This document shows, piece by piece, positions 9,203 to 9,742 of a DNA stretch of 64,000 bases. The notes under the pieces are model-generated. The model had not been told where the DNA came from and ran no database searches. It saw only the letters and a program-made list of their open reading frames with translations. Position numbers and translations under genes: made by a program. Position 1 is the stretch's first letter. Each line of letters begins with the position of its first letter. The stretch spans positions 186,001 to 250,000 of IMG/VR virus record IMGVR_UViG_3300030041_000009; one strand, 5' to 3'.

Positions 9203-9742
9203 ATGAAAGAAGAAGAATTAAAAAAATGGTTTTGGAATAAGTTTAATTCATGTTATCCAGTTAAACATTCTGATTATCCAAAAAAAATATATTGGTTTTA
9301 TGACGAAAAGTTAGTTAGAAAAATTAAATTATATAAAATTGAAAATAAAGAAATAATACATATTGATATTTCAGGTATTTGTTTATTCGAGCAGGATTTA
9401 ATAAATAACTATTTTTATTGTGACTATGATGAAATTTGGACATTTTTTAAAAAGAATTATAATAATAATTATTATGTTATTCAAATACTTATAAAGAGTT
9501 GGTTAGAAGAGACTATCAAATTGAGTTTATTAACACCTGGCGTTATTTCGGGTGCTGTCGATTCATTGTTAAAAGAGACTAGCAAATTGAGTTTATTAAC
9601 ACCGAATATAGAGTTATCTGTAGGCCTAAGTGAGTTAGAAGATACTACTAAATTGAGTTTATTAACACCATCTTTCATTCACAAATGTGATGAAAATCAG
9701 TTAGAAGATACTAACAAATTAAGTTTATTGATATCTATATAG
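9203..9742 (+). CDS. hypothetical protein whose C-terminal ~80 aa are an in-frame repeat/spacer array
   Basis: Four L(E/K)(E/D)TxKLSLL repeats at 22-aa period. Confidence 0.75.
9502..9735. CRISPR. CRISPR-like mini-array: 4 x 36-bp repeats, 3 x 30-bp unique spacers, no cas genes
   Basis: Repeats at 9502, 9568, 9634, 9700 (GTTAGAAGA.ACTA..AAATTGAGTTTATTAACACC; last one degenerate); spacers exactly 30 bp and mutually unrelated. Confidence 0.55.

Follow-up and report, generated by a model that had tools for sequence, protein, structure and literature searches.

The 64,000-nucleotide stretch of DNA analyzed here (positions 186,001 to 250,000 of the IMG/VR virus record IMGVR_UViG_3300030041_000009, in the following called the window) contains an open reading frame (ORF) at 9203–9742 on the plus strand that encodes 179 amino acids and whose 3′ part has the geometry of a CRISPR array (clustered and regularly interspaced short palindromic repeats). 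The first part of this ORF (9203–9501, +) codes for a conserved N-terminal domain of about 100 residues, hereafter the N-domain, and runs into four 36-bp repeats that start at 9502, 9568, 9634, and 9700, i.e., with a period of exactly 66 bp. Repeat 1 (9502–9537, +), which encodes 12 residues, repeat 2 (9568–9603, +), and repeat 3 (9634–9669, +) read GTTAGAAGAGACTATCAAATTGAGTTTATTAACACC or near variants thereof; the terminal or trailer copy, repeat 4 (9700–9735, +), is degenerate and reads GTTAGAAGATACTAACAAATTAAGTTTATTGATATC. The repeats are separated by three mutually unrelated spacers of 30 bp each at 9538–9567, 9604–9633, and 9670–9699 (all +), with guanine-cytosine (GC) contents of 47%, 37%, and 27%, respectively, compared to 22–25% for the window. 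The frame is open across the entire array and ends with a TAG stop codon at 9740–9742. An earlier reading of the window from its letters alone (the original prediction) had described the 66-bp period with its four repeat positions and degenerate last copy, the three unrelated, GC-richer spacers, and the absence of stop codons, and all of these features were recovered from the sequence.

Anatomy of the array and of the gene that carries it

Repeats 1–3 are mutually non-identical: They differ at two to three positions, all of which are confined to the 5′ 16 nt. The 3′ 20-mer AAATTGAGTTTATTAACACC occurs in three exact copies, one in each of repeats 1–3, compared to 0.04 copies expected from shuffled sequences. 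Near-identical direct repeats of 23–55 bp at regular spacing, as generally expected of CRISPR arrays, are found here, and within the arrays of homologous genes (sister arrays) the repeats are identical. The window repeats are unstructured, that is, they lack a repeat hairpin, and a comparison with Rfam matched neither a CRISPR repeat family nor any other RNA family. Directly upstream, at 9488–9496 (+), lies the motif CTTATAAAG, which occupies positions 6–14 nt 5′ of repeat 1 within the coding sequence and is kept at this distance upstream of most arrays of the family. In 14 of 20 arrays the motif uses the rare lysine codon AAG, compared to 17% elsewhere in these genes, which suggests that the coding sequence contains a DNA signal resembling a leader. 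Downstream of the ORF, a hairpin followed by a T-run at 9872–9912 (+; ΔG −18.3 kcal/mol, z −5.6) is likely the intrinsic terminator of the gene–array transcript. The opposite strand is likewise open over three repeats (9481–9678, −; 65 amino acids); this looks like chance, because the reverse frames of the family have stop codons in 35–43 of 78 spacers.

The N-domain is a real, foldable protein domain: It is modeled by AlphaFold (AF2) with a predicted local distance difference test score (pLDDT) of 88, contains invariant Cys, Tyr, Arg, and Phe positions, and differs from its homologs twice as frequently at third codon positions as at the others. It matches no known fold or family, as searches of Pfam, PHROGs, PADLOC, and the ESM Atlas as well as Foldseek comparisons with PDB, AFDB, and BFVD gave no informative result; a comparison with Cas2 was negative as well. 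The ORF has 46 close homologs, and a profile of its first 110 residues retrieved 671 cluster representatives at E<0.001, so that the family comprises at least 671 clusters at 50% identity. Neither relatives of the protein nor similar DNA were found in GenBank phages. Among viral sequences, 44 loci were retrieved via the N-domain alone and 22 arrays were parsed. The architecture of the family is a conserved N-domain of about 105 residues that runs in frame into an array with CRISPR geometry; on the protein level, the N-domain is followed by one to eight units, each consisting of the 12-residue constant peptide LxExxKLxxxTP and a 10-residue variable peptide.

Cassettes of such a gene and its array are often arranged one behind the other, the stop codon of the first overlapping the start codon of the second. 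In a phage relative with 42% GC, five cassettes are fused into a single ORF of 760 amino acids (L088:3001–5283) with the repeat ACTGGAAGAACACTTCAAATCGAAGGGAGTCACACC, and array tails that have decayed and become AT-rich are still open (L041, L042, L045). The first of these, L041, is a second N-domain copy in the genome of the window phage and is located at a contig end. Clusters of up to six cassettes (L068:7730–11115) are often found at contig ends or on short contigs; such tandem clusters may break metagenome assemblies. The surroundings of the sister loci consist of tandem cassettes and of leucine-rich-repeat or baseplate-like genes. In three neighboring genes (L015:1263–1779, L017:2793–3045, and L023:6892–7004) we observed 60-bp (20-residue) repeats of the leucine-rich type, which are ordinary protein repeats and form a contrast to the arrays.

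Turnover, origin, and coding constraint of the spacers

Across the family, arrays of two to eight repeats are built from 36-nt repeats ending in ACACC, and a spacer length of 30 nt is shared by 67 of the 76 unique spacers. The mean pairwise identity of the spacers is 8.37 of 30 positions, compared to 8.29 of 30 for shuffled sequences, and their GC content ranges from 13 to 53% with a mean of 34%, in genomes of 22% GC. Alignable spacers with conserved residues, which the original prediction had named as the mark of an ordinary protein repeat, are consequently not seen. Besides unrelated spacers of near-constant length, the family displays the polarized growth that is characteristic of CRISPR: In five alleles of one sister locus (L027, L078–L081), the N-domain is identical at 299–300 of 300 nt, and the arrays that follow can be written as [D'EF], [ADEF], [ABCDEF], and [XYBCDEF]. 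Units are gained at the gene-proximal end and distal units are held in common, so that the pattern is that of classic CRISPR: The leader end grows, the trailer end is conserved, and internal units are lost now and then. The number and identity of the spacers thus vary between homologs, and the units behave in the CRISPR-like manner that had been suspected, with gain at one end, a shared trailer end, and unrelated spacers.

One spacer could be traced to its source. Spacer 1 of the sister array L019, an array that is also present in L020, L021, and L068–L073, matches the window at 63313–63342 (−) in 29 of 30 positions. This protospacer lies inside an ORF at 63246–63380 (−); the spacer has the same orientation and frame as the source ORF, and the peptide KLFILIDNKL is encoded by both. 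The contigs carrying the L019 array are all at most 32.5 kb long and stem from the same three IMG samples as the contigs of the window phage. Judged by this match, the spacers appear to derive at least partly from genes of related phages. The other family spacers had no source within the 720 kb of sequence compared. For two fresh sister-array spacers, IMG/VR contained nothing beyond self matches and GenBank phages nothing significant.

The spacers are moreover under a coding constraint. Of 78 unique 30-nt spacers, no more than 6 have a stop codon in the frame of the ORF, compared to 30–54 of 78 in the other five frames (binomial p = 2e-16); counted over nine full codons, 3 of 67 spacers have a stop, compared to 33 ± 4 of 67 expected from shuffled spacers. 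Spacer lengths other than 30 nt are 21, 27, 27, 36, 36, 48, and 51 nt, as opposed to a single spacer of 28 nt and a single one of 29 nt. Bacterial arrays of the same repeat class, which are described below, behave differently: They have stop codons in 9–14 of 30 spacers in every frame (Fisher p = 1e-5 for stops), and 8 of their 30 spacers (all 29 nt) have a length that is not a multiple of three, compared to 2 of 76 in the phages (Fisher p = 6e-4). Because the loci were found via the N-domain or the repeat motif and not via long ORFs, the depletion of stops is not a selection artefact. Taken together, stop depletion and multiple-of-three lengths support the earlier idea that the frame is actively preserved. 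The repeat register is kept, too, after in-frame stops or frameshifts (L022, L023, L026, and L017, the last with a 29-nt spacer). In the five-allele set, a 29-nt spacer breaks the frame in two alleles, and allele L081 is without exactly two units, namely the frameshifting spacer and its neighbor, and its frame reads through.

Composition offers a view on how the constraint may arise. The AT-rich spacers (n = 41) resemble AT-rich phage genes in their composition by codon position, with T at a frequency of 0.47 in the third codon position (z +3.8) and depleted in the second (z −4.4), and look like sense-frame pieces of such genes; apart from being free of stops, the GC-rich spacers (n = 22) have no codon periodicity. 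A filter against stops that acts on captured DNA would yield this composition, since in a source of 22% GC almost only the sense frame is open, and the traced spacer fits. The repeats vary most at third codon positions across subfamilies (1.04 bits versus 0.52–0.76 bits at the others) and more in the 5′ 16 nt (1.12 bits) than in the 3′ 20 nt (0.50 bits), and their most conserved nucleotides, AAAWT and ACACC, are also found in untranslated bacterial repeats: Constraints at the RNA or DNA level and at the coding level are therefore both visible. The encoded tail is predicted to be disordered, with an AlphaFold pLDDT of about 25 next to an N-domain that stays confident, and spacer peptides have on average 0.55 of 9 residues in common; the homologous units and the repeat fold of a tandem-repeat or solenoid protein are not found.

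The window copy itself is less dynamic. Its region is 100% identical in seven IMG/VR contigs (181–256 kb) and in one contig of the Joint Genome Institute (JGI; 346,561 bp), and the array is unchanged across at least seven samples, with repeats that have diverged and spacers that are invariant. Evidence of polarity in the window array is confined to the degenerate last repeat, as variants are lacking, and the reads of the DNA and RNA runs are too thin for variants or transcript ends. Upstream of repeat 3, one 151-nt contig of an RNA library deviates in sequence, which is only a hint that a variant of the window array exists. The window array is probably old, still kept open, and not currently growing; it is possibly inactive.

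Repeat kinship and genomic context

We searched 185,579 species genomes (GTDB) for places where the conserved core of the repeat occurs twice with a period of 66 bp. Seven contigs were found, compared to about 0.05 expected by chance: One is a family member binned into a metagenome-assembled genome (MAG; L053), and six carry bona fide CRISPR arrays with 36-nt repeats, 29–30-nt spacers, and the motif at the same position of the repeat. In a Bacteroidetes MAG (L086), the array follows Cas9-Cas1-Cas2 of a type II-C system and its degenerate repeat is distal to cas2. This polarity equals that of the phage arrays, in which the N-domain gene occupies the place of cas2 and leader. The original guess of a type II system from Bacteroidota is hence borne out by this locus, with the addition that the same class is also found beside Cas12f-like genes: Others of the arrays adjoin proteins of about 480 residues that match Cas12f/V-U3 models (PADLOC E = 1e-105); miniature type V loci of this kind belong to Rikenellaceae and Pirellulales (L052, L054, L057, L082, L084). 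In a pattern-independent check that started from homologs of this effector, the same repeat class was again found beside them. With respect to known CRISPR repeats in general, kinship therefore extends to same-class bacterial arrays next to cas genes and stops short of an identical repeat. As an observation in its own right, type II-C and Cas12f/V-U3-like loci share one repeat class of 36 nt with a GTTG start, an AAAAAT middle, and an ACACC end but carry the degenerate repeat at opposite ends, and type V loci that are devoid of an adaptation module may borrow a type II integrase. None of the bacterial-array spacers matched the phage loci.

The window has a GC content of about 22% and is densely packed with short ORFs, and the runs that hold its region are peat metagenomes. 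The source genome fits a jumbo phage of 22% GC with contigs of up to 346 kb, an assignment based on its gene content: RNA ligase, polynucleotide kinase/phosphatase, the head domain of a CCA-adding or poly(A) polymerase, PPK2-HAD, methyltransferase, and glycosyltransferases. Within this gene content, the PPK2 fused to a ‘Swiss Army Knife’ HAD, the CCA-adding/poly(A) polymerase head, the polynucleotide kinase/phosphatase, and the RNA ligase form an RNA-repair set located at 22496–24145, 29029–29751, 30379–31317, and 54818–55840. A giant virus was considered as source and rejected: The Mimivirus early-promoter motif AAAATTGA is not enriched, the RNA ligase is phage-like, and the nearest ESM Atlas clusters, albeit weak matches, are recorded as tailed-phage (Uroviricota). 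The array gene has a PARG-like protein, an HD-domain protein, and an epimerase as neighbors, and no maturation enzymes of ribosomally synthesized and post-translationally modified peptides (protease, cyclase, etc.) occur among its neighbors in the window.

The window also encodes a tRNA with the anticodon CTA, an amber suppressor, at 62960–63031 (−). Beside it, at 63054–63380 (−), a 44-codon ORF ends with TAG and the same frame is open for 63 further codons. TAG terminates 4 of 88 long window ORFs, the array ORF being one of them, and the tRNA together with this context may indicate stage-specific read-through of TAG. Recoding of TAG as the cause of the open array frame was rejected, as reading TAG as sense lengthens the window ORFs only slightly; it is also unnecessary as an explanation, because all three kinds of stop codon are depleted in the spacers.

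A further gene of this phage genome, located about 10 kb to the right of the window (L091:10541–11998; 25% GC), codes for a candidate nuclease, a 485-residue protein of the TnpB/Cas12f family with the Pfam domains OrfB_IS605 and Cas12f1-like_TNB and a PADLOC match to Cas12f at 2.5e-9. Its relation to the bacterial V-U3-like effectors is remote (hhalign probability 57%). There is no array or anti-repeat beside this gene, and nothing ties it to the array locus.

Interpretation of the array

We favor, with moderate confidence, the interpretation that the element is a genuine CRISPR-type array without cas genes that continues a conserved phage gene in frame at its 3′ end, with a transcript that is at the same time an mRNA; the array may function as guide RNA, as protein tail, or as both. 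In this case, the 3′ end of the gene would act as leader, next to which a Cas1-Cas2 integrase would insert 30-bp spacers along with a duplicated 36-bp repeat. As no such integrase was found in the window, acquisition would need one in trans, supplied either by the host, given that a bacterial type II-C locus has this repeat class, or by another part of the phage genome. The inserted spacers would be taken, at least partly, from genes of related phages. The mRNA would double as the precursor of CRISPR RNAs (crRNAs) and most likely guide a Cas effector, host-supplied or encoded elsewhere, against rival phages: Interference with related phages is likely given the phage-derived spacer and the analogy with viral mini-arrays, which aim at related viruses (PMC6858448, PMC11656645). 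Selection would remove spacers that bring in stops or frameshifts, so that translation would continue through all repeats and spacers and yield a disordered tail. Translation would most likely be favored because it shields the long array transcript, and the tandem cassettes downstream of it, from premature Rho-type termination or decay, in which case the sequence of the peptides may be irrelevant. According to a preprint (bioRxiv 10.64898/2026.07.09.737519, citing Stringer 2020), arrays that are not translated are susceptible to termination by Rho and frequently rely on boxA antitermination.

A number of observations weigh against this interpretation. Only 1 of about 80 family spacers has been sourced, and its carrier is either a rival phage or another part of the same genome. 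For the three window spacers, the suggested search for protospacers yielded none: They have only self matches in IMG/VR and nothing significant among GenBank phages, and spacer 1 has only self matches in JGI metagenomes as well. The 185,579 species genomes, among which the host may be missing, contain same-class arrays only and none with the repeat of the window itself. In line with the original prediction, no cas gene, including cas1, cas2, and cas9, was revealed in the ORFs of the window that were compared with Pfam, PHROGs, PADLOC, and a Cas12f-like hidden Markov model (HMM), although small ORFs were not exhaustively scanned. The window moreover contains no Cas9-sized ORF, and its 64 kb hold no anti-repeat with at most three mismatches that would resemble a trans-activating CRISPR RNA. 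Beyond the window, the surroundings of the sister arrays are free of cas genes over ±4 kb, and Cas12f was detected neither in the window or the loci by HMM nor beside phage arrays by an IMG/VR pattern search. The Cas12f-linked bacterial arrays have their degenerate repeat at the opposite end relative to repeat orientation, and with this opposite polarity the repeat class does not point to a particular effector that would use the phage arrays. Furthermore, the RNA-library signal is thin and without sign of crRNA processing. Two points concern the reason for translation: Alleles with a frame break at spacer C have no stops in the four spacers gained afterwards, which hints at a constraint on each unit, and in the window there is no downstream gene that depends on read-through, so that translational coupling cannot be the reason there.

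Among the alternatives, protein diversification is the main rival, possible but rather unlikely: Spacer integration would have been co-opted to write 10-residue cassettes into a C-terminal tail that is the functional product, with the RNA role being secondary or lost. The tail might then be a variable binding tail or a decoy that carries in-frame fragments of rival-phage proteins. This would account for the strong stop depletion and the frame-preserving spacer lengths, for the preferential variation of the repeat at third codon positions, for decayed arrays that remain open tails, for the five fused cassettes of the 42%-GC relative, for the loss of the frameshifting unit in L081, and for the traced spacer, which encodes the same peptide as its source gene; the stop-free spacers gained after the frame break at spacer C fit as well. 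Against it stand the predicted disorder of the tail, which has no repeat fold, the lack of a coding signature beyond missing stops in GC-rich spacers, the persistence and continued gain of units after in-frame stops and frameshifts, the identity of the conserved AAAWT and ACACC with those of untranslated bacterial repeats, and the absence of an apparent partner enzyme or receptor context in the window. The bolder version, that phages turned CRISPR spacer integration into peptide-cassette writing and that the tail is itself the selected product, either because it keeps in-frame pieces of rival-phage proteins as a record or decoy at the level of protein or because it mediates interactions through a hypervariable sequence, we regard as somewhat more doubtful still.

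That the array is an RNA decoy or RNA anti-CRISPR, whose repeats imitate those of the host's CRISPR arrays or a partner tracrRNA and sequester host Cas proteins, the spacers arising incidentally from the activity of the host integrase, is improbable. Adjacent cas genes are indeed missing, bacterial loci with Cas9 or Cas12f-like genes use this repeat class, the window repeat drifts in its 5′ part with its 3′ 20 nt perfectly kept, and repeat-mimicking RNA anti-CRISPRs are known in phages (PMC10651486, PMC11656645). The known examples, however, are mostly solitary units without spacer turnover, whereas here up to eight repeats turn over with CRISPR polarity, one sister spacer corresponds to a phage gene, the species genomes scanned yielded no host repeat identical to that of the phage, and the coding constraint is left unexplained. 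An ordinary tandem-repeat protein with fast-evolving linkers, which shows CRISPR geometry by chance and involves no DNA capture, can hardly be upheld: The uninterrupted frame, the conservation of the repeat peptide LxExxKLxxxTP, and a 22-residue period reminiscent of leucine-rich repeat units speak for it, but this reading is contradicted by spacers that are no more alike than shuffled ones and span 13–53% GC, by whole units that come and go at one end next to a gene that is 100% identical, by the spacer that is a 29/30 copy of a phage gene, by the same repeat class beside bacterial cas genes, and by arrays that stay in register after stops and frameshifts.

The original prediction had posed a choice between a mini-array or decoy using host Cas proteins and a protein tail diversified by captured 30-mers. 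What both have in common is supported, yet their mutual exclusivity is not, as the alternatives do not exclude each other. Of the former, the CRISPR-like units hold, as opposed to a current activity of the window array, which is the same in at least seven samples and whose spacers lack a protospacer match; of the latter, the kept frame and the capture of a phage-derived 30-mer in a sister array hold, as opposed to a function of the peptide, given that the tail is predicted to be disordered.

Returning to the favored interpretation of a translated, cas-less CRISPR-type array, its closest counterparts are the virus-borne mini-arrays of the Saccharolobus portogloboviruses SPV1 and SPV2 and others (PMC6858448, PMC11656645), which are likewise short, cas-less, and viral, have spacers that aim at related viruses, and presumably rely on Cas proteins in trans. 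The known mini-arrays differ in that they are non-coding, have one or two spacers, and have repeats identical to those of the host, whereas the phage family has up to eight repeats, no identical host repeat found, and arrays that lie in frame in a conserved gene and are selected for translatability; the window array, accordingly, does not occupy a non-coding location. The type II-C arrays of Bacteroidota (L086) resemble the window array in their 36-nt repeat, 29–30-nt spacers, and GTTG, AAAAAT, and ACACC motifs, as well as in the order of upstream gene, array, and degenerate last repeat. They differ from it in that the window lacks cas genes and an anti-repeat, in the 5′ half of the repeat, which is unrelated, and in that bacterial repeats have stops in every frame and bacterial spacers have no coding bias. 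Cas12f/V-U3-like type V loci share the repeat class and the 36/30 geometry, and the window phage encodes a distant protein of the TnpB/Cas12f family; in these loci, by contrast, the degenerate repeat is at the other end, and no phage array has an effector beside it (HMM and pattern search).

Two further systems place short variable sequences inside a coding region. The multi-core PatE precursors of cyanobactins have a conserved leader and constant flanks around hypervariable short cassettes, and the flanks are kept even at the DNA level. Compared with such precursors, the phage array is without nearby processing enzymes and without a residue pattern in its cassettes, and it possesses CRISPR geometry, polarity, and repeat kinship. 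In MIMIVIRE, short sequences derived from a competing virus lie within an ORF of a large virus, as repeated copies of one 15-nt sequence. The presence of foreign-virus sequence inside an ORF is a feature in common; MIMIVIRE, however, is without repeat–spacer geometry, polarity, and kinship to CRISPR repeats, and the present virus looks like a bacteriophage.

Full-text searches of the literature returned viral mini-arrays, RNA anti-CRISPRs, and phage-encoded Cas systems and nothing on in-frame, translatable arrays, so that a single DNA stretch that would serve as guide-RNA array and protein tail at once seems not to have been described before. Viral cas-less arrays are known but have been treated as non-coding. 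The family indicates that an actively growing array can sit in a reading frame, that leader signals can lie in coding sequence, and that selection can filter incoming spacers for translatability, which opens questions on the interplay of array transcription, translation, and crRNA processing. Such loci also challenge CRISPR finders and gene callers, by which they would be filed as false arrays or hypothetical proteins. Spacer integration as a route to protein diversification is possible and, if true, would be distinct from diversity-generating retroelements. Finally, the spacer in a co-occurring contig that was copied from a gene of the window phage establishes a direct link between phages of the peat.

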